From the NCBI RefSeq assembly GCF_006345805.1, contig NC_043002.1, forward strand, positions 66,836,001 to 66,900,000: a stretch of DNA of 64,000 nt, read 5' to 3'. A program made the translations under genes and the position numbers. Of this stretch, positions 3,229 through 53,170 are shown one piece after another. The DNA comes from Octopus sinensis (taxonomy: Eukaryota). How positions within the stretch are numbered: the stretch's first letter is position 1; every line of letters begins with the position of its first letter. The notes under the pieces were generated by a model. That model had not been told where the DNA came from and did not search any database. It saw nothing but the letters and a program-made list of their open reading frames with translations.

Positions 3229-4084
3229 GGGCGGTGAGCTGGCAGAAGCGTTAGCATACCTTTTATCTGTCCTTGTTTGTTCCCTCTATGTTTAGCCTCT
3301 TGTGGGCAATAAAGAAATAAGAAACGTTAGCACACCGGGCGAAATGCCTAGCGGTATTTCGTCTGCCGCTACGTTCTGAGTTCAAATTCCGCCGAGGTTG
3401 ACTTTGCCTTTTATCCTTTTGGGGTCGATTAAATAAGTACCAGTGACGCACTGGGGTCGATACAATCGACTTAATCCGTTTGTCTGTCCTTGTTCGTCCC
3501 TTCTGTGTTTAGCCCCTTGTGGGTTGTAAAGAAATGGGTATTTCGTCTGCTGCTACGTTCTGAGTTCAAATTCCGCCGAGGTCGACTTTGCCTTTCATCC
3601 TTTCGGGGTCGATTAAATAAGTACCAGTTACTCACTGGGGTCGATACAATCGACATAATCCGTTTATCTGTCCTTGTTCGTCCCCTCTGTGTTAAGCCCC
3701 TTATGGGTAGTAAAGAAATAGGTATTTCGTCTGTTTTTACGTTCTGAGTTCAAATTTCGCCGAGGTCGACTTTGCCTTTTATCCTTCCGGGGTCAATAAA
3801 TTAAGTACAAGTTGTGTCCTGAGGTCGATCTAATCCACTGGCCCCCTCCCCCAAAATGTCGGTCCTTATGCCTAGAGTAGAAAATAATCGTTAGCAGGCC
3901 GGGCGGAATGCTTAGCGGTATTTCGTCTGTTTTTACGTTCTGAGTTCAAATTCCGCCGGGGTCGATTTTGCCTTTCATCCTTTCGGGGTCGATGAATTAA
4001 GTACTAGTTGCGTAGTGGGGTCGATCTAATTGACTGGCCTCCTCTCCAAAAATTTCGGGCTTTGTGCCTAGAGTAGAAAAGATT
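3229..4084 (+). mobile_element. SINE-B tandem array (about 4.5 units, two tail types)
   Basis: Head GGCGGTGAGCTGGCAGAA, B box GAGTTCAAATTCC, central GCCTTTCATCCTTTCGGGGTCGAT..AAGTACCAG block repeated. Tail-1 (..TAAAGAAATA) on inner units, tail-2 (..GTGCCTAGAGTAGAAAA) on the last two. Confidence 0.9.
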
Positions 4085-4179
4085 AATGAAAAACATACGT
4101 ATAATTTGAGTTTTATTTTTCCTGTTTGCATCAACATGCATGCGCACACACACATGTGTATATCTGTGTGTATTTGTGT

Positions 4180-4385
4180 TTATGTTTGTCGCCCACTATC
4201 GCTTGACAACTGGTGTTCGTTTGTTTACCTCCTCCTAATTTAGCGGTCCGGCAAAAGAGGCCGATGGAATAAGTACCATACTTTAAAACTAATAAGTAGT
4301 GGAGTCGATTTGTCCGACTAAACCCTTGAAGGCGGTGCCCCAGCACGGCTGCAGTCCAGTGACTAAAACTAGTAAAAGATAGATC
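4180..4385 (+). mobile_element. SINE-A 3' module
   Basis: TCGCTTGACAAC...GGCGGTGCCCCAGCACGGCTGCAGTC matches the 3' half of 1484-1877. Confidence 0.85.
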
Positions 4386-4689
4386 AGAGATAGGATACGT
4401 AACGTGAGTTTAGCAACAGTAAAACAATGGAAACACATTTTGTGGTGAATGGATAATAGCATGGTATATCTTGGTCTGTGTTTGTGAAGTAATGTATTCA
4501 ATCCAGTTAGAAATTCCAGACGATGAAAGAAATTCTTGATCCCTTTGAAGACTTCTTAAGAAGGGTAGCATTGATTGAGTACTTGGATATTTGAGGCTGA
4601 CTTATTTCACAATATTTCCGTTGTACCGCACCGGCAAGCAGCAAGCATGTAAAAGTAATTGTGGTTAGGGTCAAACTAAGCGAAAATAT

Positions 4690-4742
4690 AGTGAGTCTGT
4701 CTGTTTGTCTATCTATCTGTTGTTTGTCTATCTATCTATTTG

Positions 4743-4775
<33 letters not shown>

Positions 4776-5990: not shown

Positions 5991-6649
5991 TTAGTAATAG
6001 TTACGTAATTCAACCTAATTAATAAACAACTTTCTTTATTACAATACAAATAGATATTATGACAGATTCATTTAAACTGATGGAGATCTTGCTGTAGTTC
6101 TCATACTCTCTATCTCTGGTTATCATGACAATGCGGTATGATTAACAAATAATGAATACATGCTTCACAGCATGAAATGGAAGGAGGTGAAAGGTCAAGA
6201 GCGCCACCTGTTTTAAATATTCAATTTGAGTAGTCTATGATTATACAATGCAACTTAATAAAATATGGCTGTCTTTCTGAGAAAAAAGGTTGTCTGAGAG
6301 TGGTTATGCTATTGTCATTCTGGTTTAGCCCCAAGACAGCTCTGCTCGAGTAGGACTATGATCAAAGTATTTCTAACCGTGACCATTTCATCGCATTTTT
6401 TCCGGTTTCAATACAGTTTCAATGTATCTAAAACCGCATTATCCGAGGTATCTTTCCAACTTTTAAAAGAGTTTAGCAAGTGATTTGAGGCATATCTGCT
6501 ACTACTTCTAGCAAGTCAAGCGACCATTTAAAAGCTCTCTCGTTGGCGCGAGTGCGTATGAGATTTGCTGAGGTAATTATATATATAGGTATATAGACTT
6601 AAACATATACAGTAATTAAAATGTAAATTTTGTATGTATGTATGTATGA

Positions 6650-7518: not shown

Positions 7519-7735
7519 TACTTATTTTATGGGTCTTTTTGCCGAACCGCTAAGTTACGGGGATGTAAATACACCAACACTAGTTCTCAAACGATAGTGG
7601 GGGGGGGGGGACAAACACACACACCGTCTTCCAAATCCACTCAAACGGCTTTGGTCGGCCCGAGGCTATAGCTGAAGATACTTGCGCAAGGTGCCACGCA
7701 GCGGGACTGAACCCCGAACCATGTGCTTGAGTAGT
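7519..7735 (-). mobile_element. SINE-A, internally deleted
   Basis: Reverse complement of the head/CORE and part of the 3' module. It replaces the outer right TIR of the mariner. Confidence 0.8.
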
Positions 7736-7739: not shown

Positions 7740-10153
7740 GAAATGAAAGGTTTTGTTCCAGATGTGAGCTGTTCTGTAGATATCAGTTCTGGCATCGCGT
7801 CCAACGTACTGGCAGCGAGGTTGGCCCTCGACCAACACCTCAACGCCAAACACTAAGGATGCGTTGTCAGAGCTAGGATGCGTGCTCTGAGGAACGGAGT
7901 TGGTGCCGCCCGAGAGGCTCGAGTGACGGAGGCGAAACGAGGAAACAAAGCCACCATTAGGTCTCTGACGGATGAACAGGGGGCGCGATTTACTCGAGCC
8001 TGAAAGGATATGTGAGGCCTTTCAGCAACACTTTGCCCGACTGTTTGGGACAACTGGTTGATCAGAACGCAGAGTGGTCTTTAGTGCCTACCTGCATGGC
8101 CTGCCACGACTCTCAGCAAGAGAGGCGGAGTGTTGTGAAAGACCTATCACAGCCGCGGACGTGATGGCAGGCTGCGCGGGAGACACGTCGCCAGGCTTGA
8201 ATGGTCTTCCCTATAAACTTTATTGTCATATGCCAGACTTGTTTAGAGGTGTCTTGGCAGCTGTCTTCTGTAACTGGCAGCAAAACGGGAATATCCCCGT
8301 CTCTGTAAAGCGAGTGCTAAAGAAAGATCCAAACAAGGGGAACGTCATAGATAACTCCAGGCCCATCACTCTATTCAATGCAGATTTGAAGATTTTGGCC
8401 AAGGTGTTAGCCGAGAGGTTGGCGCTTGTCATCGAGAAACTAGTCGACAAGGCGCAAACGTGCGCCGTGCCGGGTAGGAGTATCCATCTAAGGACAGGGT
8501 GGTTAAGAAAGCTGGCATGGGCGGGGCGCTGATCAATTTGGATCCATCAAAAGCTTTCGATATGGTAGACCATCACTACTTGGAGGCTGTACTTAGAGCG
8601 GCTGGTTTCGGTCCCATCTTCCGTGGTTGGATCGCAGCGGCATTCGCTCGGTAGTTCGCGTAAATGGTCATCTGTCTAGACCATTTAACATCACGCGTTC
8701 GTTTCGCCAAGGATGTCCCCTCTCGTCGCTTCTGTTCGTATTGACTCTTGAGCAGGAGCTGGCGACGCTGAGGGGCATCTCGCGAGAGCTGGAATGCGGG
8801 AGAGCGTGTATGCATACGCGGACGACGTCACCGTCATAGTGTCGAGCCACAGGCAAATCGACCTGGTCGGCGAGACACTAAGACGAAGCGGTAACGGGAG
8901 CAAAAATTAAACGAGAAAAGTCAGTGGGTTTGCAGCTCGGCACCTGGAGAAGCAAGTTCATGCCGTCCAACAGCGTCTCCATCGTGGGACGCTGGACCGA
9001 CGAACCGGTTAAATTGCTCGGAGTCTGGTTCGGTCCGGACCTCCAAATGGAGAAGAACTGGGGCGAGATAACGACTAGGGTAGCCACTCGCACTCAGCAA
9101 TGGGCCGAGAGGAAGCTATCCCTAAAAGGTCGGGCAAAGGTGACGAATACGTACATCGCATCCGTCATCGAGTACCGTCTGACCGTCGTACATTGTCCCA
9201 CCCCTACCATCACCAAACTGGAACGCATACTCTTCCGCTTTTTTGAGGAAGGGAAGTGTTCCGATGGTTAGGCGATTCATTTGATGTCAACATCCGCTAA
9301 ATGGAGAGCATGCCGTGGTTTATGATGCGCAGACATACGTTGAGACTGCGACATCTCCGGCGCTTCATAGACCACAGTGAACAGATGTGGTCGCCGTTTG
9401 TGCTATCGAGAAGCATTATCCTTCCGGGATAAGCTCTACAGACACGGTTCGATACACACCGGACCGACTTGCCCGAGATGCGGTCTGAGCGACGAAACCA
9501 TTCTGCACGCACTCATGCAGTGTCCAACCAGTTCAGACCTGTGGGCTTATGCCGAACGGCTGCTGTCACGTGTGGGACGAATTCGCTTGTCGGTCGAGTC
9601 TATCGGGAAAATTGCTCCGCCACCTTCCCTCAACCAGGAAGGCAAAGCAGTCTTCATCGTACTGGTGGCCATAGTGAAAGAATGTGTGTGGTGGACTCGA
9701 GCGAAAGGATTAGAGACAAACGCTTACCTCTCTGGCCAATCGCTCATCAACTTTTTCAAGTACCACTTGAAAAGGAAGGTGAGAATAGAGAGGCAAGTTT
9801 TGTCTCGTGAAAGTTTCAACAAAAGGTGGGTGAATGTAGCAAAGATCGTACGTGCGCGTGACGAAACCACTTTGAGCATGATCCTGTAAATCCAAAAGAG
9901 AGAGAGAGAGAGAGCACTTTGCTCGCATGTGTATATTCCCTCCCTGTCTGAGGTTACCGTGGTCTTTTCCGTAGGTTTTTCTTTCCACGGATAAACTTAA
10001 TCTTGTTTTGAACTCTTAATATTTTCTGTGATACACGATCAGAACTTTTGATCAGAACTTTATTTTTCTCCTTTTTTTTTTCTATTTTCGAAAAGAAAAG
10101 CTCTACATTGTATTTTGTCCCCTCTGTTAGACCCTGTGTGGCTAATAAAGAAA
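7740..10153 (+). mobile_element. L1-Tx1 clade LINE, 5'-truncated, decayed ORF2
   Basis: ORF pieces SPGLNGLPYKLY, NSRPITLFNADLKILAKVLAERL, FRQGCPLSSLLF, ayADDV-like segment, C-terminal CPRCGLSDETILHALMQC zinc knuckle. Ends AATAAAGAAA. Confidence 0.9.
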
Positions 10154-10639
10154 CTTATGTATGTATGTATCTATCTATCAATCCATCCAGCCAACCACCT
10201 TTCTCGCTGTCTGTCGGTCGGTCCGTCCATCCGTATACACACATACAGAACACGAAATCACAACAAAGATTCACATAAAAGCAGGCGTAGATTCACGTAA
10301 GGTCACACGTAATACATTTTCTAACGTCAACCTATGCAAGCATCGCCTTAATTATTGCAAGCATTTCTCCACTCTCCCACCACTTTGGGTGTGGGTTGTT
10401 GCTGTTTAGCTTGAGTGACACTCTCATATTCCACTCGCTAATACGATATGAAACTTTCTTACTGGTTGCCACGCTACACTAAGCTGTCAGCTTCAAGACC
10501 GATATTGCTAGCCGTAAGATGTTTGAAGAGTTAGATTGCCACCAAGTGTCACTCGACCAACACTACTTGAGAAGAGTACTATTTCCTCTGCAAACACTAA
10601 TTAGTTGAGGTATGGGTACATTCAACTCAGCAAATCCTC

Positions 10640-18671: not shown

Positions 18672-19712
18672 GTGGTGGTTGCCTCCTCCTCGTGCAGAGT
18701 TTGACCATCTCCTGTACCTACACCTTAGAACCATCATAGCATCTGATGTGGCATTTTAAGCAGACAATGTTCTGAAAAGACACCCACATAGATTGCACAT
18801 CCGATTTGGACCACCAAGAGCTGCAGATAAGTTCTGATCTTTGTGGATCTTTAAATGGCTTCTGAGGCCTCCGTTAGATTTGCAAACCTTCTGGTATACA
18901 CTGCATTCAAAGGTGTGCACAGACATATAGGCTGAACAGTTCGTAGAGGCTCGTTTTCCATGGGTTCGCAAATGAGATTTGAGCCTAGAAAAAGAAAAGC
19001 ATGGTCTGTCACAAACTGTGCACACAAAAAGGTCATTGTCATTCACCTTCTCGTCATTCTTCCTTAGATCTCTTTTGAGTCTTACATGCATTATCCTGGC
19101 CTCTTCAGATGCTTTCACTTCACTCCACACTTTTGTTCGCCATCCAACTCGATCTGAAGCAAGGGTTTCCATGTCTTCTGGATCCATTCCAAGTGACTTC
19201 ATAGTAGTTCTTACGTCGTCCTTAAACCTTTTTTTAGGTTTACGCCGATAGCGTTTCCTCTCTGCAAGCTCACCATAAAACAGCTGTTTCGGCATGCCTT
19301 CAACCGCCATTCGAACAATATGGCCACACCATCTCATTTGGTTCCTCAAAATCATAGCTTTTATTGACATCTGTGTTTGGAGTAAAAGAAGTCTATTTAA
19401 TTTTTAAAATGCGATGAAGGCATTTTTGGTGGAATTGTTCTAACAATTTAAAATGTCTTTCATAACAAGTCCATGTTTCACAAGAATACAACGGGGATGG
19501 TATGACAAATGATTTATAAAGAGCCAGCTTTGTATTCTTATTTATATGTCGCTGGCACCAAACGCGTGACTCCAAACCACCAAATGGTTTTGCTGTCCTT
19601 TGAATTCGCAGATGTATTTCTGTATCAAGATTTCTATCATTTTGTACAGAGCTTCCAAGGCAGATGAACGAATCGACAACCTCAAGTAACTTACCCGTAA
19701 CAAAAATTTTAG
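18672..19712 (-). mobile_element. RTE LINE, 5'-truncated, with three C-terminal C2H2 fingers
   Basis: LEVVDSFICLGS, LYSCETWT, RWCGHIVRM..MPKQLFYGEL, then CTVCDRPC..LKSHLRTH, CSVYQKVC..LRSHLKIH, CNLCGCLF..(frameshift)LKCHIR. (CA)n tail. Confidence 0.9.
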
Positions 19713-23154: not shown

Positions 23155-23330
23155 AAGAGTGGCTGTGTGGTAAGTACCTTGCTTACGAACCACGTGGTTC
23201 CGGCTTCAGTTCCACTGCGTGGCATCTTGGGCAAGTGTCTTCTACTATAGCCTCGGACCGACCAAAGCTTTGTGAGTGGATTTGGTAGACGGAAACTGAA
23301 AGAAGCCCGTCGTATATATGTATATTTATG

Positions 23331-29415: not shown

Positions 29416-29467
<52 letters not shown>

Positions 29468-29680: not shown

Positions 29681-29749
<69 letters not shown>

Positions 29750-35525: not shown

Positions 35526-35943
35526 TAATTATGACGAGACATTTTCATTTAATCGATACAGTACATCTGGTAAATGCAATTTCTCGGGTTATTATGCGTG
35601 AGTCAACTTCATTTATGGCTCTCAATTAATCGTCTGCGATCTTTCTCTTTTTTGAGGATCTCGTTTCGATTACGAAATCTATGATGTCAATATTGAACTG
35701 TATGCTCATTGGTTGAAATCTGGGACCAGATTCTTGGCCTATATTGCAATCAGTTTCCAGTGCTTTGCATTTCATTTTGGTCTCGTAAAGTAAAATCCTT
35801 CGAATTTAATTTTTTTGTCCATTTTCCCTTTGACAATCTGAAAGAAAGTAAAAACATAAGAGAGAAATCAAAACTTTTGACATAATCGAGTATAACGCAA
35901 TCTGCGCTTCAAAATAGTATATTACATGAAAATAGTTAAATAA

Positions 35944-36620
35944 TGGCGCAGGAGTGGCTGTGTGGTAGGTAGCTTGCTTACCAACCACATGGTTCCGGGT
36001 TCAGTCCCACAGCGTGGCACCTTGGACAGGTGTCTTCTGTAGCCTCGAGCCGACCAAAGCCTTGTGAGTGGATTTGGTAAACGAAAACTGAGAGAAGCAC
36101 TTCGTATATATATGTGTGTGTCTGTGTCTGTGTTTGTCCCCCCAACATTGCTTGACAACCGATGCTGGTGTGTTTACGTCCTCGTAACTTAGCGGCTCGG
36201 CAAAAGAGACCGATAGAATAAGTACTAGACTTACAAAGAATAAATCCTGGGGTCAATTTGCTCGACTAAAGGTGGTGCTCCAGCATGGCCGCAGTCAAAT
36301 GACTGAAACAAGTGACAGAGTAAAAGAGAGAGTAAATGTTTATTCCAAAATTTAAAAGTAACAAAAAAAAATCACAATTAATTTCTGAACCAATCTTTCT
36401 TTTCTTCTTTCATTTTCTTTTACTTGTAACAGTCATTGGACCGTGGTTATGCCGGATCACCCCCTTCAGGGGTTTTGGTCGACCAGATCGACCCCAGTAC
36501 TTATATTTTATATTTCAGGTACTTATTGTAGCCGTCTCTTTTGTGGAACCACTAAACCAAGGAGACGTAAACAATCCAACGGTTGTCAAGCGGGAAAGGG
36601 GACAACACAATCATAAAGAT
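35944..36620. mobile_element. SINE-A full copy (+, 35944-36332) and 3' module (-, 36410-36620)
   Basis: Consensus matches. Confidence 0.88.
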
Positions 36621-36750: not shown

Positions 36751-39700
36751 TCCTTAAATCCTTAAAAATGTTTTAGCCCGAGGCCGCGGCATGCTGGGGC
36801 ACCACACCGCTGAATGAGCTACACTAGTTTGTGAATCCACCTCTGATACGTGGCACTTGATCAACAAGGGAGTTCGATGCTGCTGCCCGCATCCGTGTCT
36901 CCTGTCGTGAGGTAGGTTCATCTGGACTCCCACAAAGAAGAGATCTTTTAGTTTTAAAGAAACCCACATCCACACCATGTAAGTCTCTCAGGCATTTAGG
37001 GAGGATGTTAAAGAGCTGTGGTCCTCTGAAACCCAAGCTGTTGCAGTATCTGGACCTGTATTTTGATGGTGATGTTGGAATCCTTGGCACCACGCAGCGG
37101 CGCCCCGTTCTGCGGTTGGAGTAACTTTGAATGCCAAAGTTTGGGACAAGACCCTCCAGGATTTTCCAGATGTATATCACTGCATATCTCTCCCGCCTCC
37201 GCTCCAGGGAGAAGAGGTTTAATACCTTCAGTCTTTCCCAGTAGCTGACATTTTGCATTGAGACGATTTTCTTTGTGTAGCTTCTCTGAGTTGCTTCGAG
37301 TTCTGCTGTTTGTTTTATATTGTGTGGTGACCAAAGTTGGGAGCAGTAGTCCAAGCGGCTGAGGACAAATGTTTTCCATAGGACCATCAGTGTCTCCTTC
37401 TCTCTTGTTCTGAAAGTTCGGAGAATCCATCCAGCTAGCCGTCTGCATTTTATCACCAGATTAGCAATATGCATTTGGAAAGATGCATCATTGCTCATGT
37501 CAATGCCCAGTCACGCACTGATTTTGACTCAGGGATTGCAATTCTTCCTGGGCCAGTGTATCCAGTCTTCACGTCATTTACCTTTGTGTGCCAGTAGCGC
37601 AGGGCCTGGAACTTACCTGCATTAAACTGCATGTTGTTGTCCTCAGCCCACCTGTATATTGTGTCCAGCTCATGTTGCAGATGCGCAATATTTTCAGGGT
37701 TTTGTATTGCGTGGGAGACTTTTGTGTCATCTGCATAGCTAGCAAGGGTGGTCATCGTAGCAACTGAAGGCATGTCTGAAAGGGCCACTATGAACATCAG
37801 TGGCCCCAAGACAGTGCCCTGTGGGACACCGCTTGTTATTTGCGTTTCCCTGGAGGTGGCTCCATTGCTCACAACTGCCTGTTTTCTGTCTTTTAGGAAG
37901 TTGTGCAGCCACTCTCCAAGTTTCCCGCCTATGCCGAGACCACGCAGTTTGTGACAGATCATACCATGGTCGACTTTATCAAAGGCTTTTGCAAAGTCAA
38001 GATATATTACAATCCACATTTGAGCCATTTAGTAGCTGTTTCAACACCCAGTCATAGTGTTGCAGGAGCTGTGTTAGGCAGCCTCTACCTGGTCGAAATC
38101 CATGCTGGGTGTCAGACAGTAAGTCATTTTCTTCAAGGAACATAATTAGTTTCTTACGGACTATTCGTTCCATGACTTTGCTGATGTGTGAGGTCAGAGA
38201 GATAGGCCTATAATTTTTAGCATCTGCTCTGCTACCTCCCTTATGGATAGGGCATATTACCCCCTCTTTCAGTTTGACTGGAGCTTACCACTTGCAAGAA
38301 AGCTCTGAAAAAGAAGCTGTAGCGGTTTTGCAAGGGCTCGTTTGCACATTTGAGAAGGATCGCTGGGAATCCATCAGGTCCAGCAGCTGAGTTTGTGTCA
38401 ATCTCATCAATGGCTAGTGTGATATCATCTTCTTCGATGTTGATGTACTCAATTTTTGTCTCTTGGCCGCTGGTAAAGTGGCAAAGAATTCTTCTGGGTT
38501 GTTTACTTGCCTGTGTCCTAGAGGTGTAGTGAACACACTTTGGAACTGTTCGTTCAGTATTTCACTTATCCTCGTGGGATTTCCTGTGAGAGAGCCATCT
38601 TTTTGGAAGAGAGGTCCTATTCTCTGGTGCACTGTGGCTGTCTCTTTGGCAAACTTAAAGAAGCTTTAGGGTTTGATTTTATTTTCTATTACCCAAGCTT
38701 CTTTATCTGCTCTCTCCTTTTCATGGGACTGATGTAGACTTTTCTCAGTTTCCATTAGCATTCTTTCGAGCCGAGACTTCTCACCACTTTTGGTGTGCTT
38801 GCTCAGGCGGTTTGCAATCCTTGTCGTCGTCTCATAAGAATCCTCCTTTCTCTAGGGATCCTGTTTTTGTTCTTGTGTGTGCTGGCCCTGCACATTGGGA
38901 CATATTTGTCACATATGGCTTGTATTATGGACATGAAGTGTTTGTGTTTCATGTTTATGTCCGGTGTGGAGAGACATTCAGGCCAATCCTGTTTGAGGAT
39001 CTCTTTCTCAATCGACTTCCAGTTGGCTTTATGAAAGTTTAAGTTGGAGAGATGGTGGGTGCTTCGTATAGGCTGTGTGTCTGCGGGGGCTTTTGTTCCA
39101 TACATAGACAGCTCTATTATGTTTTGATCCGAGATCATTGTCGGCATCACATTAACATTATGGATATATCCATATTGTTTGTGAAGCAGAGATCCAGTAT
39201 ATTATCTGCCCTTGTTGGTTGCAGAACTATTTGCTCTATGAAAGAGGTATTTGTGAGATGGATCAGGACTCCACCTGTGCCTGCTGATGGTGTGTCATCC
39301 CTGGGAGCATCTGCCCCCCAGGCCATTCCACATTGGGGAGGTTAAAGTCACCCATGAAGAATACACTGTTGTGCTGTTCAAGGTTGGTGAGGACTTCTCC
39401 TATTTTTGTTAGGCAGTCTTCAAACATGCCTGAGTGTTTTGGGGCATCTGGTGGGCGATATGTAGTGCATATGACGATATTCAGTTGTCTTGTGTGTACA
39501 ATTTGAGTTTCACATACTGAGTTTGAATATGACAGCAGGACCTGGGGCGTGAGGTCATCTCGGATGTACATTGCAACTCCACCATGGCTCCTCCCTTTTC
39601 TATCTGTGCGTATGACTGCATATTGCGGCATGTGTATTTCTGCATCACCTATATCGGGTTCAAGATGCGTTTCTGTGATTGCATGTCACAAGGTCTCTCA

Positions 39701-40091
39701 GGAATGAAATTTTCTTTTTACAGTTTCCGCGCAGCAGCCCTCCTATATTCAGTAGAAATATTTTTGTGGTGTGTGTGTTGGTGTTGGTGTCTGTGGTGGC
39801 CATCCTGCATCTGTTGGAGGTGGCCTTATGTGGTGGTAGTTCCAGCTTTGTGCTTGTAGCCAGGTCAGCTGCTGAACAATTTTTTGTGCCATGCACAAAA
39901 AAGACTGCTGTTCAGCTGCCGCCCTTCTCACATCTGGGTGAAGCTGGCCACCTGTTGGGTTTCCGCGCACCACATCTGCATACCGTCTTTCAGTAGTGGT
40001 CAGTGCGCTTTTTCCCCTTCTTTTAACTTTTTGTTTTTGTTTTTGTTCTCCCTTAGGGAGGGACCTCTGTCTCGCGTCCGTGCGGTTTTGG
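36751..40091 (-). mobile_element. CR1-clade LINE #1: complete ORF2 region plus end of ORF1, frameshifted
   Basis: LLNIGGL, GGVAMYIR, YRPP, MGDFNLP (APE); YLDFAKAFDKV, GVPQGTVLGP, YADDTK (RT); GWILRTF, LDYCSQLWSP, LERRRER. Tail (TTTAAGGA)n. Confidence 0.92.
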
Positions 40092-40267
40092 TATGTATAT
40101 ATATATATATGTATGTATGTATATATGTATGTATATATATATGTATGTATATATATATGTATGTATGTATGTATATATATGTATGTATGTATGTATATGT
40201 ATGTATGTATGTATATGTATGTATATATATGTATGTATGTATATATATGTATGTATGTATATATATG

Positions 40268-40306
<39 letters not shown>

Positions 40307-40388
40307 GTATATATGTATGTATGTATATATATATATGTATGGATATATATATGTATGGATATATATATGTATGGATATATATATGTAT
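40092..40388. repeat. (TA/TATG)n array
   Basis: Direct reading. Confidence 0.95.
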
Positions 40389-41723
40389 GGGTTCCGTAAT
40401 GGAAGGGACTGCCTAACGCAGCTCCTGCATCACTTTGAGGACATTTTGAGAGCTTTGGGAGAGGGCTCCAACACCGATGTCATCTACCTTGATTTCAGTA
40501 AGGCCTTCGACAGGGTCGATCACAAGATCCTATTGAAAAAACTATCCGACATTGGTGTCTCTGGAAAGTTACTGAAATGGATTAAGTGTTTCCTGACAGA
40601 CAGATCTCAACATGTTGTAGTTGAAGGGGTAAAATCAAGCCCAGCCAAAGTCAGTAGTGGCGTTCCGCAAGGCACTGTGCTGGGCCCACTTCTTTTCATC
40701 ATTACATTAATGACATTAATGACATCATCAAGCACAGCAACATAAAAATCTTTGCAGATGACTCCAAGCTACAGAAGGTCATAAATGAGGCGAGTGACCG
40801 GACATGCCTTCAGTCAGATCTACTGGCTGTTATCCAATGGCAGAAAAAAACAATATGCTGCTGAACGAGGATAAATTTGAGCTAATCCACTTTGGAAAAG
40901 AGGATGCCCTGAAACTCCCATACTCCCTTCCTTCAGGTGAAACTCTCGCGGCGTCCAACAACATCAGAGACTTGGGAGTAATTGTGGACAACAACGTAAG
41001 CTGGGCCACTCATATAAACACCAAAGTTGACATGGCCCGCAGAATGTGTTCCTGGATTCTCAGAACTTTTCAGTCGAGAGATATCCACACCATTATCCTT
41101 CTCTTCTCCACTTTTGCCCGACCCCACCTTGAATACTGTTGTCCACTGTGGTCTCCCCACACAATACAAGGTATCATAAAAGTTGAAGCACCACAAAGGG
41201 CAATCACAAAAAAGATAGATGGCATGACAGGCCTCGACTATTGGGGTCGACTAGAAAAGCTAAAACTCTATTCTCTCCAACGTCGTCGTGAGCGCTACAT
41301 CATCTGCATGATGTGGAAAATATTCCATCAGCATTGCCCAAATGATGTTGGCATCACCTTTAAGGTACATCCAAGGCTTGGGCCCCGTGCCATCCGCCCA
41401 AAACAAAATCGCACTCTCATCTCATAACAACAATACGGCACAATTATTTCACCTCAATTGGCCCCGCTCTCTTTAACATTACACCAAAAACATTAAAACA
41501 GAAACTGACCCTATAGGGTTCAAGAAGTCTTTGACAGATTCCTTCAAGAAATCCCGGATAAACCCCCTACACCCGGATATGTCTCTGTAAACATAACTCT
41601 CTACTTGAGTGGGCCATAGTGCCCAAATTCTGACTTGAAAGACTTCACCAGGTGGTGCTATTAAGTTAGACATGGCCTGGGCCAATAATGGCCGAAACCT
41701 ATCAAAGTATCAAAGTATCAAAG
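40389..41723 (+). mobile_element. CR1-clade LINE #2 (different subfamily), 5'-truncated
   Basis: [50 protein letters not shown]. Tail (TATCAAAG)3. Confidence 0.92.
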
Positions 41724-41850
41724 TATGTATATATGTATGTATGTATATATATGTATGTATGTATATATATGTATGTATGTATATATATATGTATGTGTTA
41801 TATATGTATGTATGGATATATATATGTATGTATGTATATATGTATGTATG

Positions 41851-41884
<34 letters not shown>

Positions 41885-42234
41885 TGTATGTATATGTATG
41901 TATGTATGTATATGTATGTATGTATGTATGTATATATATGTATGTATGTATGTATATATATATGTATGTATGTATATATATATGTATGTATGTATGTATA
42001 TATATATGTATGTATGTATATATATATATGTATGTATATATGTATGTATGTATGTATATATATATGTATGTATGTATGTATATATATGTATGTATGTATG
42101 TATATATATGTATGTATGTATGTATATATATATATGTATGTATGTATATATATATATGTATGTATGTATATATGTATGTATGTATGTATATATGTATGTA
42201 TGTATATATATATGTATGTATGTATATATATATG

Positions 42235-42280
<46 letters not shown>

Positions 42281-42512
42281 TGTATGTATATGTATGTATG
42301 TATATATATATATATGTATGTATATATATATATGTATGTATATATATATATGTATGTATATATATATATGTATGTATATATATATATGTATGTATATATA
42401 TATATGTGTATATATATATATGTATGTATATATATATATGTATGTATATATATATGTATGTATGTATATATGTATGTATATATGTATGTATGTATATATA
42501 TATGTATGTATG

Positions 42513-42546
<34 letters not shown>

Positions 42547-42548
42547 TG

Positions 42549-42582
<34 letters not shown>

Positions 42583-42927
42583 TGTATATGTATGTATGTA
42601 TATGTATGTATGTATGTATATGTATGTATGTATATGTATGTATGTATGTATGTATGTATATGTATGTATATATATATGTATGTATATGTATGTATGTATG
42701 TATATATATATGTATGTATATATATATGTATGTATATATATATGTATGTATATATATATGTATGTATATATATATGTATGTATATATATATATGTATGGA
42801 TATATATATGTATGGATATATATATGTATGGATATATATATGTATGTATATATATATATGTATGTATATATATATATGTATGTATATATATATATGTATG
42901 TATATATATATATGTATGTATATATAT
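41724..42927. repeat. 1.2-kb (TA/TATG)n array
   Basis: Direct reading. Source of the 400-aa YMYV/IYIH ORFs. Confidence 0.97.
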
Positions 42928-45387
42928 GATTGATTGATTGATTGATTCTAGTTTCAGCTTATGAGCTGTGGCCATGCTGGGGCACCGCCATTTGGTGTTG
43001 CTACTTGGTTTCACTTCATGGAGGCTTTCTAGCAACTGCTATTTGGTGCATGAGAGAGTTCGATGCAGCTGCCCTCATCTGCCCCTCCTGCCGTGAAGTT
43101 GGTTCATCTGGGAACCTGACAGGAAGAGATCCAGCTTCATTTAAAGACATCTGTATCCACCCCATGCAGGTCTCTCAGGTTCTTCGGAGGATATTGAAGA
43201 GCTGTGGGCCTCGGAAGCCCAGGCTATCACAGAATCTTGTCCTACATCTTGATGGCAGGTTTGGTGTCCTAGGCACCACGCAGTGGCGCCCAGTTCTGGC
43301 ATTTGCGTAACTCTCGATGCCAAAGTTCAGGACACTTCCCTCCAGGATCTTCCAGATGTATATTATGGCATATCTTTCCCGCCTACGCTCCAGGGAATAT
43401 AATTTAATCTCTTGAGTCTTTCCCAGTAGCTTACATTCTGCATAGAGGCTATCTTCTTCGTGTAGCTCGTTGGATCGCCTCAAGTTCTGTGATCAACTTG
43501 ACACTGGATGGTGACCATAGCTGAGAGCAATAGTCAAAGTGGCTTAGGACAATGTCTTCCAGAGGACCATCATGGTTTCTTGTTCTCTTGTTCTAAAGGT
43601 TCTAAAATCCATCCAGCCAGCCGTCTACATTCCATTGTCAGTTTAGCAACATGTACATGAAGGTCGCGTCATCACTCATGTGAATACCCAGGTCACGCAC
43701 TGATTGTGCTCTGGGATTGCAATCCCTCGGGTCCAGTGTATTCATGGGTATTGCATTCAGTTTTGCATGCTGATAGTAATAAGCTTGAAACTTTCCAGCA
43801 TTGAACTGCATGCTATTCTTTTCAGCCCACTTGTATATTTTCGTCCAGCTCACATTGCAGGTGTTAGTGTCCTCAGGGTTCTGTATTGCCTGTGAAACTT
43901 TGTATCATCTGCATAACTTGTGATCGTGGCTCTCTGCGTGGCTGAGGGCATGTCTGAGAGGGCCATTATGAACATAGTGGTCCCAGAACAGTGCCCTGCG
44001 GACACACCGCTCACTATTTTTGTGTTAATGGAGGTGGCCCCATTGGCTACTACCACCTGACTTCTATCCTTCAGAAAGTCATGAAGCCTTCTCCCAGTTT
44101 TCCAACTATGTTGAGATCACGCAGTTTGTGACATATCATTCCATGATCGATTTTATCAAAGGCCTTTGCAAAGTCGAGATATATCACTTCCACATTTGAG
44201 TGGTTGAGCAGCCGTTTCAGCACCCAGTCATAGTGTTGTAGGAGCTGAGTTAAACAGCTTCTCCCTGGTCGGAACCATGTTGGGTGTCGGGCAGCAAGTC
44301 ATTCTCTTCAAGGAAGGTGATCAGCTTCCTTCTGACTATTCGTTCCATGACCTTGCTGATGTGTGAGGTCAGAGAGATAGGTCTATAGTTCTTGGCTTCC
44401 GCTCTGCTACCTCCTTTATGAATGGGGCATATTTTACCGTCCTTCAGTTTTCTGGTAGTTTGCCAGCTGCAAGGAAGCTCTGAAAGAGGAACTGCAGTGG
44501 TCTTGCTAGGACTCTCTTACATGCTTTTAGGAGGATTGCCGGGAATCCATCGGGGCCAGTAGCTGAGTCTGTTTTCATTTCATCTATAGCCTTGGTTACA
44601 TCGTCTTCCTTTATATCGATGTAATCTATCGTTGCCGCCTCTGATTTTATATCTGCAGTGGTAAAAAAGTCAGTTGGATTGGTGATTTGGAGATGCCCAA
44701 GGGGTGGAGTGAAAACACTCTTGAATTGTTCATTCAGTATTTCACTTACCCTCATTGGTTTTCCTGTAAGTGTGCCATCCTTTTCGAGGAGTGGCCCTAT
44801 TCTACAGTGCACTGTAGCTGTTTCTTTGGCATACCTGTAGAAAGCTCTGGGGTTAGATTTTATGTTTTCTATAGCCCAGGCTTCTTTGTCTGCTCTTTCT
44901 CTTTCTTTTTCATGGGAGAGTTGCAGACATTTTTCGATTTCCAACAGTTTTATTTTTAGGCGGGACTTTTCACTGCTTTCAATCTGTTTGTTTAGGCGAT
45001 TTGAAAATTTCGTACGCCGTCTCATTAAATTTTCCTCTCTCTGGGGATTTTTTTTCTGTGTACAGTGGCCTTTCTCTCTGGGACACATTTGTAGCATATG
45101 GCTTGCATTACAGACATGAATTGTTGGAGTTTCACGTCGATGTCTGGCGAGGAGAGACATTTAGGCCAGTTTTGTTTGAGGATCTCTTTCTCAATTTGTT
45201 TCCAGTTTGCCTTATGGTAGTTCAAGCTGGAAAGATTTTGAGGGTTTCTTGTAGGCTGCATGTCCGTGCTCTCTTTTGGCCCGTACATGGTCAGCTCTAT
45301 CATGTTGTGATCCGAGAGTAGTGTCGGTGTCACTTTCACATTATGGATGAGATCCATGTCATTTGTGAAGCAGAGATCCAGTGTGTT
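42928..45387 (-). mobile_element. CR1-clade LINE #3, 5'-truncated within the APE domain
   Basis: [44 protein letters not shown]. Tail (AATC)5. Colinear with #1. Confidence 0.92.
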
Positions 45388-46229
45388 ATATGTATGTATG
45401 TATGTATATATATATGTATGTATGTATATATGTATGTATGTATGTTATATATGTATATATATATATATGTATATGTATGTATGTTATATATGTATGTATA
45501 TATATATGTATGTATGTATATATGTATGTATGTATGTATATATGTATGTATATATGTATGTATGTATATATGTATGTATGTATATATGTATGTATGTATA
45601 TATGTATGTATGTATATATATATATATATGTATGTATGTATATATATATATGCATGTATATATATATATGTATGTATGTATATATATATATGTAGTATGT
45701 TATGTATATATATATATGTATGTATGTATATATATATGTATGTATGTATAATATATATGTATGTATGTATGTATAAGTATATATGTTATGTATGTATGTA
45801 TATAATATATGTATGTATGTATGTATATATGATGTATGTATGTATATATATATGTATGTATGTATGTAATATATATATATGTAATGTATGTATGTATTAT
45901 ATATTATGTATGTATGTATATATATATGTATGTATGTATATATATATGTATGTATGTATATATATGTATGTATGTATATATATGTATGTAATATATATAT
46001 GTATATATATATATGTATATATATATTGTATGTATGTATGTGTATGTATGGATGTATGTATATGTATGTATGTATATGTGTATTATATATATGTATGTAT
46101 GTATGTATATATATATGTATGTATGTATGTATATATATGTATGCATGTATGTATATATATATATATCTGTCTGTATGTCTGTCTGTATGTATATATATAT
46201 ATATATATATGTCTGTATGTATGTATGTA
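45388..46229. repeat. (TA/TATG)n array
   Basis: Direct reading. Confidence 0.97.
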
Positions 46230-46695
46230 TCTCTTATTATAAAAGGCAGATTTTATCTGCCTCCCTTTGTCAGTTATAGAAATCTACAATATAGGATTTC
46301 TTCAATTACAATTTACCTAGCATTTTTAAGAGTAGAATGCATCAGGTCATGCCAGGTCCAGTTTTTAAAATTTAAACTCCAATTAAGCAAAATTTACAGA
46401 AAACTCACATTCTGGTGTGTATGTCAAATGCTTTTCTTAATGTGGTTTACACCACACGCACACACACACACACAGTGTGCAACGAATAAAATGAAAGTAA
46501 TTCACTGTGTGTTGACAGGTAGACAATAGAATGCGATGGCGATGTAATATTTGTTTCTGTCTATCACGCTGATAGATACATGAGTAAAATGTATGGCAAG
46601 CTAAGAGATAAGAGTGAGTGAAAATGTTCTTGGAAGAGAGTAAATAGCGAGAGTGATTTGAGGAAGACTTTACATTAAATAACCGTAGTGGCTTG
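46230..46695 (+). mobile_element. probable Helitron 5' portion
   Basis: A|TCTCTTATTATAAAAGGC start like the other Helitron 5' ends. No CTAG 3' end found. Confidence 0.45.
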
Positions 46696-46715
46696 TATAT
46701 ATATATATACATACA

Positions 46716-46979
46716 TAAGACAGTAAGGTGTGATTTGAGGGAGATTTGGCTGCTATTTCTACCATGTCTAGCTGCCATGTAGGGGTCTCCCTCATAGGCT
46801 CATACATACATATATACATAGATAAGACAGTAAGGTGTGATTTGGGGGAAATTTGGCTGCTATTTCTACCAGGTCTAGCTACCATGTAGAGGTCCCCCTC
46901 ATTGGCTCATATTATATACATACATAAGACAGTAAGGTGTGATTTGAGGGAGATTTGGCTGCTGTTTCTACCAGGTCTG
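46716..46979 (+). repeat. 2.5 tandem copies of a 102-107-bp unit
   Basis: TAAGACAGTAAGGTGTGATTTG..GATTTGGCTGCTATTTCTACC starts at 46716, 46823 and 46925. The core also occurs dispersed (about 6480, 26360, 56030). Confidence 0.85.
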
Positions 46980-48183: not shown

Positions 48184-48231
48184 TGTATGTATGTATGTAT
48201 GTATATATGTATGTATATATATGTATGTATG

Positions 48232-48267
<36 letters not shown>

Positions 48268-48369
48268 TGTATATATATATGTATGTATGTATGTATATAT
48301 ATATGTATGTATGTATGTATATGTATGTATGTATGTATATGTATGTATGTATGTATGTATATATGTATG

Positions 48370-48400
<31 letters not shown>

Positions 48401-48600
48401 GTATGTATATGTATGTATGTATATATGTATGTATGTATATATATGTATGTATGTATATATATGTATGTATGTATGTATATATATGTATGTATTATGTATA
48501 TATACGTATGTATGCCGTAATCTCTTTTAGAGAGACTTAGTAATTTTAATATTTCTATTATGTATATATATATATGTATGTATATATATATATGTGCGTG
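48184..48600. repeat. (TATG/TA)n array
   Basis: Direct reading. Confidence 0.95.
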
Positions 48601-49394: not shown

Positions 49395-50660
49395 AGGTGG
49401 TGAGCTGGCAGAGTTATTAGGTCGCCGGACAAAATGCTTAATGGCATTTCGTCCGTCTTTACGTTCTGAGTTCAAATGCGGTCGAGGTCGACTTTGCCTT
49501 TCATTCTTTCTGGGTCGATAAAATAAGCATCAGTCGAGCAACGGGGTCGAAGTAATCGACTTACCCCGCTCCCCCAAAATTGCTGGCTTTGTTCCAAATT
49601 TGAAACCAGTATTCAGGGTATCAGAGGGTGGCGAGATGGCAGAATCATTAGCATGACGGGAAAAATGCTCAACAACATACCGCCCATTTTTCCGTTCTGA
49701 GTTCAAAAGCCGCCAAGGGACCTTTGCCCTTTTATCCTTTCGAGGTCGATAAAATAAGTACCAGTTGAATTCTGGGGTTGATATAATCGACTTACTCCTT
49801 TTCTCGAAATTGTTGGCCTTGTGTAAAAGTTTAAAAAGTAATATTCTTTTCTACTCTTGGCACAAGGCCCAAAATTTTTGGGGAGGAGGCCCAGTCGATT
49901 AGATCCACCCCAGTACGCAACTGGTACTTAATTTATCGACCCCGAAAGGATGAAAGGCAAAGTCGGCTTCGGCGGAATTTGAACTCAGAACATAGCGGCA
50001 GACGAAATACTGCTAAGCATTTCGCCCGGCGTGCTAACGATTCTGCCAGCTCACCGTCCTTTTAAAAGCAATATTCTTTTCTACTCTAGGTACAAGGCCC
50101 GAAATTTTTGGGGAGTGGGCCCAGTCGATTAGATCGACCCCAGTGCGTAACTGGTACTTCTCGACTAATCGACCCCGAAATGGTGAAAGGCAAAGTCGAC
50201 CTCGGCGGAATTTGAACTCAGAACATAGCGGCAGACGAAATACTGCTAAGCATTTCGCCCGGCGTGCTAACGACTCTGCCAGTTCACCGTTCACCGTCCT
50301 TTTAAAAGCAATATTCTTTTCTTTTCTAGGTACAAGGCCCGAAATTTTGGGGGAGGGGGGCCCAGTCGATTAGATCGCCCCAGTACGCCCGGTGTGCTAA
50401 CGATTCTCCCAGCTCGCCGCCTTTTTAAAAGTAATATTCACGCCTTTAAGGGCAGCGAGCAGGCAGAATCGACAGCGCTTTGTATATGAAGCTTTGAGTT
50501 CTGAGTTCTTTAAGTTCTGAGTTCAAATCTCCCCAAGTTCAACTTTGCCTTTCATTCTTTTAAAGTCAATAAAACAAAATACCAGTGAAGAACTGGGTCA
50601 ATTTAATCAACTGACCCCGCTCTCACTTTGAAATTGCTGGTCTTGTGCCAAAATTAGAAA
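49395..50660. mobile_element. SINE-B cluster: three + copies and a - strand tandem triplet (49841-50425)
   Basis: Triplet units start at 49841, 50071 and 50311, each separated by TTAAAAG(C/T)AATATT. Confidence 0.88.
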
Positions 50661-51107
50661 GGAATATTTACGCTGTTTAGAGTTGTGATGAGGTAGTGAC
50701 AGATCAGCAGCAGTAGTAACAGCAACAGCAGACTGATTTGACGTCTTTAGTTACGCCCCTCTACTCTCTGAATTACTCGTCCCGCTGAGATCAATTTTGT
50801 TCTCTCATCGTTTTAGGGCGGAGGAAAGTAACTGAGAGCCTTGTACTGGAATCTAATAAATCGACGACACCCCACACCCCGGAAACTTGCTCTCTTGTTA
50901 TCAATAATGGAAATATACTAAGCTGCGAATAGATATCTAAACTCAAGCACACACACACACACACACACAATTATACACACACACATAGCAATGCAGTTGT
51001 ATATTTTTAGTGTTTGATGACCTATTATTATGTATGCACATGTATATATAACTGTTTCTATCAACACACGTATAGTAGACACAAACATACATACCTCAGC
51101 GCATGCG

Positions 51108-51921
51108 TGGCTGAGTGGTAAGAAGCTTGCTTCCCAACCACATGGGACCTTGAGCAAGTGTCTTCTACTATAGCCTCGAACCGACCAAAGCCTTGTGAGT
51201 GGACTCAGAACGTAAAGTCAGACGAAATACCTATTTCTTTACTACCCACAAGGGGCTAAACACAGAGGACAAACAAGGACTGACAAACGGATTAAGTCGA
51301 TTATATCGACCCCAGTGCGCAACTAGTACTTATTTAATCGACTCCGAAAGGATGAAAGGCAAAGTCGACCTCGGCGGAATTTGAACTCAGAACGTAGCGG
51401 CAGACGAAATACCTATTTCTTTACTACCCACAAGGGGCTAAACACAGAGGGGACAAACAAGGGCAGACAAACGGATTAAGTCGATCATATCGACCACAGT
51501 ACGTAACTGGTACTTATTTAATCGACCCCGAAAGGATGAAAGGCAAAGTCGACCTCGGCGGAATTTGAACTCAGAACGTAGCGGCAGACGAAATACCTAT
51601 TTCTTTACTACCCACAAGGGGCTAAACACAGAGAGGACAAACAAGGACAGACAAACGGATTAAGTCGATTATATCGACCCCAGTGCGCAACTAGTACTTA
51701 TTTAATCGACTCCGAAAGGATGAAAGGCAAAGTCGACCTCGGCAGAATTTGAACTCAGAACGTAGCGGCAGACGAAATACCTATTTCTTTACTACCCACA
51801 AGGGGCTAAACACAGAGGGGACAAACAAGGACAGACAAACGGATTAAGTCGATCATATCGACCACAGTACGTAACTGGTACTTATTTAATCGACCCCGAA
51901 AGGATGAAAGGCAAAGTCGAC
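51108..51921. mobile_element. SINE-A head fused to a 4-unit SINE-B (-) array, 182-184-bp period
   Basis: Units start at 51204, 51386, 51570 and 51754. Confidence 0.92.
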
Positions 51922-52189
51922 TGGCCCCCACTCCCCAAAAATTTCGAGCCTTGTGCCTGGAGCAGAAAAGGATATTCTCTGATGTTATGAATTAACAAGT
52001 TTTGCCAAACAATATTTGTGTATATAATATTTTTATTAAATTTCAAACCTTCATGATTGGGATGCTCGTGAAATAACTTGGGGTGATTTGAACTCAGAAC
52101 TTAATGCTTTGGTGCGAAATAACTATCGCATGTGATGAGCTGCGCTGCTTTTGAGTTTTTCTAAAATGATTCTTATTATAAAGACAAAC

Positions 52190-53170
52190 AAGATGGCGAG
52201 TTGGTCGAATCTTTAGCACTCCGGACAAAATGTTTAACGGCATGGCATTTCGTCTTCATGATCTGAATTTAAATTTCGCCGAGGTCGACGACAAAGTCTT
52301 TCATTCTTTCGCGGTGGATAAAATAAGTACCAGTTACACAATGAGGTCGATATAATCGACTTAACCCCCTCTCCCCCGAAGGTGCTGACTTTGTACCAAC
52401 ATTTGAAATCCTTATTAAGACATGTAGAAGGCAGCGAGCTGTTAGAATCGTTTTCATGTTCGATAAAAATGCATAGCTGTATTTTCTTCTGGTTTTATGT
52501 TTGGAGTTCAAATTTCACCGGAATCGACTTTGCTTGTTATCCATTCGGGGGTCAAAAAAATGAATACTAGTTGAGCACTGGAATCGATGTAACCGACTAC
52601 TATAGCCTCGAATGACCAAAGCCTTGTGAGTTGACTCAGAACGGAATGTAACCGACTACCTATTTCTTTACTACCCACAAGGGGATAAACACTGAGAGGA
52701 CAAACAAGGACAGACAAACGGATTAAGTCGATTATATCGACCCCAGTGCGTAACTGGTACTTATTTAATCGACCCCGAAAGGTTGAAAGGCAAAGTCGAC
52801 CTCGGCGGAATTTGAACTCACAACGCAACGGCAGATGAAATACCTATTTCTTTGCCACTCACAAGGGGCCAAACACAGAGAGGACAAACAAGGACGGACA
52901 AACGGATTAAGTCGATGATACCCCCCCCCAGTTCGTGACTGGTACTTAATTTATCGACCCTGAAAGGATGAAAGACAAAGTTGACCTCGGCGGAATTTGA
53001 ACTCAGAACGTAACGGCAGACGAAATACGGCTACGCATTTCGCCCGGCGTGCTAACGATTCTGCTAGCTCGCCGCCTTGAATTGATCTAACCGACAACCT
53101 TCTTTCCCACCAAAAAAATAAAAACAAAAGAAAAAAAAAATTCAAGCCTTGTACATATAGTAGGAAGAAT
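52190..53170. mobile_element. SINE-B cluster: two + copies, a 2-unit - array (52660-53077) and a tail fragment
   Basis: Consensus matches; array junction near 52840. Confidence 0.85.

Follow-up and report, generated by a model that had tools for sequence, protein, structure and literature searches.

Arrays of SINE-B units

The window analysed here is a stretch of 64,000 nucleotides of Octopus sinensis DNA (contig NC_043002.1, positions 66,836,001 to 66,900,000 of the forward strand) which is of cephalopod type and rich in short interspersed elements (SINEs), fragments of long interspersed elements (LINEs) and (TATG)n microsatellites. One of the SINE families, here called SINE-B, forms four short head-to-tail arrays in which the units are joined at one and the same nucleotide, and the origin of this junction is the subject of the present analysis.

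SINE-B is a retrotransposed SINE consisting of a 47-nt head (H; GGCGGCGAGCTGG...GCTTAGC), a 118-nt body (B; GGTATTTCG...ATAATCGAC) and one of several related 3' tails, the youngest of which is T1 with 66 nt, TTAATCCGTTTG...GTAAAGAAATA. Tail T2 is 51 nt long, and T1, T2 and T3 can be aligned as diverged forms of one tail, with an insertion of about 20 nt in T1. The head folds into a long hairpin and a B-box-like sequence, GAGTTCAAATTCC, is located at B25-37; ARAGORN and Rfam gave no matches in the window. The hallmarks of a LINE-dependent SINE are present, with target-site duplications of 17–22 nt at the T1-tailed monomer M1, at array L4, at a T1 fragment nested in array L1 and at the Octopus vulgaris loci L005 and L006, and truncated copies of the T1 family are found at 3261-3319 in the window and at 2273 and 6431 in L006. 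The O. vulgaris loci were reached by a translated search with head and body: the peptide translated from SINE-B shows a 96% match to 'hypothetical' proteins of that species, and two of these proteins led to L005 and L006, the latter in the chromosome-level assembly OX597833.1.

About 39 SINE-B segments are present in the 64 kb. Among neighbouring copies, whatever their age, a head-to-tail arrangement is far commoner than a head-to-head one (about 12 clusters of the same orientation and 4 of opposite orientation), as in the full-length pairs with spacers of 10–13 nt at 49397/49627 and 52194/52430. Tails of the T2 type continue into ATT repeats, and at 29200-29740 (-) there are two SINE-B copies, one of them T2-tailed, each within an (ATT)n microsatellite. 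The second abundant SINE, SINE-A (GGCGCAGGAGTGGCTGTGTGGTAAG...GGAAACTGAAAGAAGCCCGTCGTATATATG), is always followed by a TA/TG microsatellite.

The four arrays, L1 to L4, were mapped by a segment map and direct reading of the sequence (Table 1), and their structure can be written as H(47 nt)-[B(118)-T1(66)]n, with periods of 184-185 in Tandem Repeats Finder. At all nine inner positions the sequence reads ...AAAGAAATA/GGTATTTCG, where the slash marks the junction, located between SINE-B positions 47 and 48 (T1/B1). The original prediction, made from the sequence alone, of four arrays with one junction about 48 nt into the SINE and with T1 on every inner unit is borne out by the segment map. The junction 18-mer AAAGAAATAGGTATTTCG has 10 matches in the window with up to three mismatches, against 0.11 expected; nine of them are T1/B1, and at the other (52652-52669) T1 runs into a target-site duplication which by chance starts with GGTA. 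A tenth T1/B1 case is located in the O. vulgaris assembly (L006).

The arrays contain 2 to 4.5 units which are 82-95% alike, except for the recent duplication in L3. Head-to-tail units made from part of the SINE, with an extended terminal unit, are present as in SINE-derived satellites, whereas the long homogenised arrays of such satellites are not, and the predicted term 'dispersed satellite' is overstated for arrays of this size. As had also been suggested, the 3'-most unit may be of another kind, namely a T2-tailed CTGTTTTTACG variant in array L1, a T3-like unit in L2 and a 29-nt fragment of B in L3, and GG follows T1 in both monomers, M1 and M2. The head of array L1 also holds a 59-nt T1 insert, and L4 ends at its own duplication and not in a partial unit. 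A probable 14-nt duplication, GTAACTA..A..AA, surrounds the entire L2, its two copies matching at 10 of 14 positions. Array L3 has lost both of its original flanks: at the palindrome GTCGAC (51921/51922) its 5' end, B45, runs into the start of an inverted T2 tail, probably through a microhomology-mediated deletion between inverted SINE-B copies, and its 3' end abuts an antisense SINE-A with a truncated 3' end, which is not a possible product of retrotransposition.

That the junction is an artefact of collapsed or chimeric repeats in a draft assembly is hardly credible. Mis-assembly could produce the 99% pairwise identity seen in L3, but the junction is present at four loci with different diverged units and unique flanks, and also in the independent chromosome-level assembly of O. 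vulgaris, within an intact 18-nt duplication.

Table 1. SINE-B arrays, T1 insertions and other repeats. Positions refer to the window unless L006 is given; target start is the beginning of the duplicated target.
Feature	Position	Strand	Description
Array L1	3230-4084	+	H interrupted by T1 fragment, B-T1, B-T1, variant B-T2, H17-47-variant B-T2
L1, H1-31	3230-3260	+	
L1, T1 insert in head	3261-3319	+	59 nt, 5'-truncated; duplication 17 nt (H15-31), target start AGAAG / AGAAA
L1, duplication of insert	3244-3260, 3320-3336		17 nt, AGAAGCGTTAGCATACC and AGAAACGTTAGCACACC
L1, H15-47	3320-3352	+	
L1a	3353-3536	+	B+T1
L1b	3537-3720	+	B+T1
L1c	3721-3885	+	CTGTTTTTACG variant B + T2 tail
L1d	3886-4084	+	H17-47 + variant B + T2
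Array L2	5990-5440	-	H, B-T1, variant B-T1, old B + T3-like tail
L2, H	5990-5944	-	
L2a	5943-5761	-	B+T1
L2b	5760-5576	-	variant B + near-consensus T1
L2c	5575-about 5440	-	old, degenerate T3-like unit with internal deletion
Array L3	51921-51203	-	B45-118+T1, three full B+T1 units, then B1-29
L3e	51203-51231	-	29-nt B fragment (B1-29), GACTTTACG variant
Dimer L4	53076-52661	-	H + two B-T1 units, inside older + strand SINE; duplication 21 nt, target start GGTTG / GGTAG
L4, beta-type unit	53028-52845	-	
L4, alpha-type unit	52844-52661	-	
L4, 5' target-site duplication	53079-53099	-	21 nt, GGTTGTCGGTTAGATCAATTC
L4, 3' target-site duplication	52580-52600	-	GTAGTCGGTTACATCGATTCC
L4, filler before 3' duplication	52601-52645		45 nt; own 14-nt duplication, partial copy 52643-52660
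Monomer M1	35291-35521	+	T1-tailed, beta type; duplication 22 nt, target start GGAGT / GGTAT
M1, target-site duplication	35266-35287, 35522-35543		22 nt, GGAGTAATTATCACGAGACATT and GGTATAATTATGACGAGACATT
Monomer M2	62294-62066	-	T1-tailed, beta type; GGACAAC next; duplication short or unclear
O. vulgaris monomer	L005		duplication 21 nt, target start AGTAT
O. vulgaris dimer	L006 10233-10646		junction AAAGAAATA/GGTATTTCA; duplication 18 nt, GATAAT[G/A]ACAGTAATCAA, target start GATAA
O. vulgaris T1-T1 tandem	L006 5670-6125	-	fixed T1/H15 junction AGAAACGTTAGC
T2-tailed SINE-B array	49830-50421	-	three units, period 233; first unit internally deleted
LINE copy with zf-RVT	8074-10154	+	degenerate; reverse transcriptase fragments + C-terminal zf-RVT; zf-RVT copy 8074-9889 by Pfam
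LINE fragments	31590-35002	+	
	36824-39631	-	
	39996-41427	+	
	44444-45357	-	
	18756-19370	-	
(TATG)n/(GTAT)n arrays	40091-40389, 41723-42928, 45389-46230, 48184-48514		very long; interrupting some LINE fragments
SINE-A copies	1467-1614, 7636-7696, 20587-20656, 23220-23280, 28374-28434, 35946-36072, 51100-51203		
Unrelated tandem repeat	27789-27960		69 bp, 2.3 copies, 87-97%
Unrelated tandem repeat	46699-46978		107 bp, 2.7 copies

Origin of the array units

The arrays had been described as lying at four separate loci; there are four of them, but they form two neighbouring pairs. L1 and L2 are 1.4 kb apart in opposite orientation and have nothing in common outside the SINE sequence. Between L3 and L4 the distance is 0.7 kb, and 38 nt of antisense SINE-A beside the array are common to both. 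At L4 this is part of a 45-nt filler, composed of a piece of B and the 38 nt of SINE-A, which is a copy of the 3' junction of L3 (compare 51165-51212); a 14-nt duplication without mismatches, GTAGTCGGTTACAT, brackets the filler, which has the look of a patch templated 1.4 kb away. Since the common flank is a secondary filler with a duplication of its own, L3 and L4 are not duplicates of one whole array.

Two subtypes of T1-tailed units can be told apart by markers based on few copies, alpha (GATTAAATAAG) and beta (GATAAATTAAG, with T at B17). Their order differs between loci, being beta-alpha in L4, alpha-beta in the O. vulgaris dimer of L006 and alpha-variant-old in L2, and the two heterodimers, L4 and L006, are enclosed in duplications of 21 and 18 nt respectively. 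In L1, L2 and L3 the last T1 is joined exactly at B1 to the body of another, older type: CTGTTTTTACG with tail T2 in L1c, and GACTTTACG both in L2c, with an old T3-like tail, and in L3e. The foreign type begins no more than 12-14 nt from the junction at all three loci, which rules out a homologous crossover as the origin of these joins. In L2b, too, T1 is joined exactly to B1 of another subfamily. This unit is a mosaic, because its B is far more changed than its T1 (22 of 118 against 1 of 66 positions, Fisher p=0.0003).

Part of the growth has been local. In L3, units a and c and units b and d are 99% identical, the two types being 95% alike, and the resulting 368-bp higher-order repeat, which could be inflated by assembly, derives from unequal exchange; L1a and L1b have private changes in common (ATACAAT, GTTCGTCC). 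These observations indicate that the arrays grow locally, but the units of L2, of L4 and of the O. vulgaris dimer differ in kind, so growth by local duplication only, which would have spoken against the original prediction, is not what is seen.

Another explanation to be considered is a small number of source genes of dimeric or multimeric structure, which RNA polymerase III would transcribe as one unit for retrotransposition, with unequal crossing-over altering the copy number. Four consecutive T are absent from the consensus unit, and from L3 and L4 altogether, which makes read-through possible; the dimers are each contained in one duplication, and the higher-order repeat of L3, the private variants of L1a and L1b and the otherwise unseen variant GACTTTACG common to L2c and L3e would all be in line with such sources. 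This explanation is nevertheless improbable, as it has to deal with the beta-alpha and alpha-beta dimers, both flanked by duplications, with the alpha-variant-old order of L2, and with 3' units whose tails are T2 or T3, from older subfamilies, and whose join falls exactly at B1. The fixed subunit order with position-specific diagnostic bases that characterises dimeric SINEs was not found, and no such diagnostic changes are common across the loci.

Still less credence can be given to pure DNA events, in which slippage or unequal or ectopic recombination would have remade the junction independently, aided by the microhomology of a GGTA after T1. Recombination between repeats is the usual account of SINE tandem arrays (PMC10702118, PMC11481361), and GGTA does follow T1 directly in M1 and L4, 184 nt from the GGTA at B1, but heterodimers cannot come from duplicating one unit, and homologous crossovers would need to have hit the first 11 nt three times (L1c, L2c, L3e).

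Judged from the unit sequences, neither local duplication alone nor one multimeric master explains the junction. The mixed dimers and the exact B1 joins to older types indicate that it was formed repeatedly, site-specifically and in connection with the 3' end of T1, and it was probably made each time by the retrotransposition machinery and then amplified locally. The original prediction had proposed either targeting of resident copies or template jumping; the recurrent junction linked to retrotransposition stands, with the addition that two arrays (L3 and L1, by L1a/L1b) grew by local duplication.

Target sites of T1 insertions

Ordinary T1 insertions have duplications of 17-22 nt and start at RRWA sites (Table 1). 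In L006 the sequences after three more unselected T1 ends are AGAAG (inside SINE-A), AGATG and TATAT. RRWA is found at 8 of the 11 T1 junctions other than B1, against a background of 0.043 per site, and at all four insertions outside SINE-B whose duplications are proven; since the motif was chosen after the data had been seen, the p-values are optimistic, and the preference was measured on SINE insertions only. GGTA, which had been predicted beforehand, occurs at 2 of the 11 junctions where about 0.004 would be expected, and a target bias of T1 outside the arrays is hereby confirmed.

The related 5-mer RGWAK has only three sites in the sense strand of the SINE consensus, H15, B1 and T1-52, and the recurrent junction points are exactly H15 and B1: in 10 junctions the 3' partner begins at B1 and in two at H15. 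They coincide with the nick motif of ordinary insertions, because RGWAK is located at both. H15 has been used by the T1 fragment nested in array L1 (3319/3320) and in a seamless T1-T1 tandem in L006 (about 5900, AAAAAAATT/AGAAACG). The target sequence is duplicated at H15 (3244-3260 and 3320-3336), and this 17-nt duplication of the head is direct evidence of insertion into resident SINE-B DNA, whereas all the B1 junctions are seamless. RNase P processing is ruled out as the source of the H15 junction, since the tRNA-like fold starts at H1 and not at H15. The 3' end of T1 could not have paired with the nicked strand at B1 as a primer, because the two are of the same sense and not complementary.

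The T1 tail and its partner LINE

The 3' end of the degenerate LINE at 8074-10154 (10114-10154, about 41 nt, TTTGTCCCCTCTGTTAGACCCTGTGTGGCTAATAAAGAAAC) matches T1 22-64 at 36 of 43 positions. T1 and the LINE hence share a 3' tail, as is expected of a LINE-dependent SINE. This copy, the only one in the window with a zf-RVT domain, has a weak Pfam match to RVT_1. The 3'-end match to a zf-RVT LINE indicates that the T1 tail derives from an L1/Tx1-type LINE, in agreement with the resemblance that had been pointed out earlier, and the family of this copy, which appears L1/Tx1-like from its sequence, is likely to be that of the T1 partner. L1-Tx1 is the L1-type group reported to be recently active in O. 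vulgaris (PMC13282606).

A search with the C-terminus of the LINE gave only three short metagenome contigs, and a PDB sequence search with it irrelevant matches only. The T1-like tail was not seen at the contig ends L008 and L009, and contig L007 stops about 20 nt before the point matching the start of the T1-like 3' end of the window LINE. The other LINE fragments have APE endonuclease and reverse transcriptase domains, and two show C2H2-like zinc-finger motifs after the reverse transcriptase.

A scan of metagenomes with the T1 end gave only three chance matches, in bacterial genes, and no match to the T1/B1 junction was found in a scan of viral contigs. Translation across the junction found one metagenome contig, which holds a monomer, and two open reading frames of the window had no record in the contig index. 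Metagenome contig ERZ23499442 (L001) is cephalopod DNA in a metagenome and carries a T1 monomer of the beta type, with a T2-type SINE-B immediately behind it that breaks off at about B72.

Formation of the junction

In the fold of the consensus RNA, H32-43 pairs with B1-12 around a UAGC loop, giving 12 bp. The pairing is retained in 84% of cells, compared with 39-59% when the partner is slid (23 copies, all subfamilies), and the covariation is modest. B1 is the first base of the 3' arm, at the boundary between loop and arm, and the junction itself, GAAATA-GG-TATTTC, is a near-palindrome.

With the array anatomy, the independently recurring junction, the target motif, the LINE-like tail and the local amplification as observed, we tentatively favour nested target-primed insertion into resident copies with a homology-assisted, seamless joining of the 5' end, followed by unequal crossing-over. 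The T1 machinery would work by target-primed reverse transcription with duplications of 17-22 nt, nicking at N/RRWA on the element strand, often at /GGTA or /AGTA. Such a nick site should be present at position 48 of every SINE-B copy (GC/GGTATTTCG), at the first base of the 3' arm of the hairpin, and the T1 RNA would be reverse transcribed from a nick there in a resident SINE-B of any subfamily. The 5' end would be joined to the resident head through homology and without a visible duplication, because the new cDNA is homologous to the head just upstream, and the product would be H-(B-T1)-B..., with a seamless head-to-tail junction. The same process might take place, more rarely, at the second motif site, H15. 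Once two units are present, further units could be added by unequal crossing-over, and arrays might also be copied as multi-unit RNA polymerase III transcripts, since the consensus has no T4 terminator. We infer from this that the acceptor was resident DNA rather than RNA, and that homology resolved the 5' end. In its strongest form, which we put forward with somewhat more reserve, a SINE driven by a Tx1-like LINE may home into its own family, the nick motif being placed at the apex of the hairpin and the homology between cDNA and head replacing the second staggered cut. In support of nested insertion, L2c resembles an old resident, as its tail and body are about as diverged as other T3-type copies and the duplication around the array matches at only 10 of 14 positions; the greater divergence between L1c and L1d (13%, compared with 7% between L1a and L1b) also counts in its favour. 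So do the match of both junction points with the nick motif, the duplication at H15 and the preference of Tx1-clade LINEs and their SINEs for positions in another repeat family (PMC4494074).

Several observations weigh against nested insertion. In the sample, which is this one window and 40 kb of O. vulgaris DNA, no insertion at B1 with a visible duplication of B1-20 was found, and insertion into DNA at B1 therefore rests on the analogy with H15. The head of L2, located beside an old-looking duplication, is young and of the T1 type (1 mismatch in 47), and the head of L4 has the marker of the first unit instead of one of the supposed resident. The resident type is likewise absent from the first 20 nt of L1b, of L3d and of the first unit of the O. 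vulgaris dimer, so a simple staggered-cut model fails and a resolution of the flap or annealing type must be assumed. Furthermore, the private changes in the 5' unit of L4 are about twice those in the 3' unit, and the short motif predicts about 5% of the events at B1 where about half are seen.

In the main alternative, which acts at the level of RNA, reverse transcription of a SINE-B RNA during a single retrotransposition event would halt at position 48, and the enzyme would switch to a T1-tailed RNA, which it recognises, starting at the 3' end of that RNA and repeating the process. The stop at position 48 would be due to a pause at the hairpin apex or to a cut of the RNA in the loop, and the last template would be copied to its 5' end, giving the sole head, before the chain is integrated with one duplication. 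Reverse transcriptases of non-LTR elements, that of R2 for example, are known to jump from the end of one template to the end of another. A single duplication is indeed found around each heterodimer (21 nt in L4, 18 nt in L006) and probably around L2 (14 nt). By type, the head and the initial 20 nt of every unit go with the unit directly after them rather than with the 3' one, and the young head of L2 and the first-unit marker in the head of L4 point the same way. The two units in the O. vulgaris dimer have nearly equal numbers of private changes, 12 and 14. Two further L006 structures fit as well: a headless solo unit (B1/2-118 + T1) in an antisense SINE-A at 6431-6608 (+), with a duplication of about 5 nt, and a chimera at 2150-2470 (-) composed of SINE-A 1-95, the last 36 nt of T1 and SINE-A 20-end, with the junction T1/AGAAGG, whose overlapping SINE-A parts differ by about 25%. 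The position of B1 at the boundary between loop and 3' arm of a conserved hairpin would also be expected.

Template jumping gives, however, no account of why both recurrent junction points match the nick motif of T1. It needs RNA of the old degenerate T3-type unit (L2c) and of SINE-A as starters, and the 17-nt overlap at the H15 fragment has the length of a normal duplication. To our knowledge, the breakpoint in the 3' partner is variable in template-switch chimeras, whereas here it is fixed, and local duplication is required anyway for L1a/L1b and L3. We regard template jumping as the less likely of the two and as the main rival, well ahead of the source genes and the DNA events discussed above, and keep to nested insertion into resident copies as the favoured reading.

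Relation to known systems and significance

LINEs of the Tx1 clade and their SINEs prefer specific positions in another repeat family, for example Tx1-Mar and SINEU in the crocodilian Mariner-N4_AMi, and Tx1L in Tx1D (PMC4494074). As in SINEU/Tx1-Mar, a SINE with an L1/Tx1-like tail recurs at defined positions of a repeat, and the preference is partial, many insertions being located elsewhere, as is reported for SINEU-1 and SINEU-2. In contrast to that system, the preferred target of SINE-B is its own family in the same orientation, and the outcome is a seamless head-to-tail array instead of a nested insertion with duplications.

SINE-derived tandem repeats are already known. In squamates, satellites are built of tandemly repeated SINE parts, the terminal unit being extended (PMC10702118), and bivalves have tandem-like SINE arrays of the forms TSD1-(SINE)n-TSD1 and TSD1-(SINE-TSD1)n, TSD1 being the target-site duplication (PMC11481361). 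The T2-tailed array at 49830-50421 is of the latter type (PMC11481361), with the spacer AATATT[G/A]CTTTTAAAAG after every unit and flanking the array, i.e. the SINE and its target-site duplication are repeated together. The T1 arrays resemble the squamate and bivalve arrays in having part-SINE units, a longer terminal unit that reaches the SINE terminus, unit boundaries common to several loci, some dimeric higher-order units and a duplication around the whole array. They differ in that the units keep the complete 3' tail and lose only the first 47 nt of the head, that the arrays are short with subfamilies and ages mixed within one array, and that the junction is fixed to one nucleotide at a position tied to the insertion motif. 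Both papers invoke unequal recombination and give no site-specific mechanism (PMC10702118, PMC11481361).

Chimeric retrocopies made by template switching are represented by the U6-L1 type and by the end-to-end jumps of R2. As in these, a 5' partner with a complete 3' end is joined to a 5'-truncated 3' partner and one duplication surrounds the composite, but in SINE-B the breakpoint is fixed to one nucleotide and the partners come from one SINE family. Dimeric SINEs of the Alu type are amplified as a unit; they share with the arrays two related monomers head to tail within one pair of duplications, whereas in SINE-B order and type are not fixed, there are 2 to 4.5 copies, and the second unit is without the A-box part of the head.

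Unequal recombination and duplication by chance are the causes usually given for the change from an interspersed to a tandem repeat. In the SINE-B arrays a site-specific event linked to retrotransposition appears to come first, which, if true, would constitute a defined and testable route from SINE to satellite, and a mobile element that aims at its own copies would have found a safe harbour. The share of SINEs in the O. vulgaris genome is about 12% (PMC13282606), and the process could therefore shape a sizeable part of it. Self-targeting, if true, would at the same time act as a brake on the family, because the inner units are without the A-box part of the head and would be dead as source genes. 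If SINE-B does home into its own family, each insertion would add one headless unit, and retrotransposition, not recombination, would seed SINE-derived satellites across the octopus genome.

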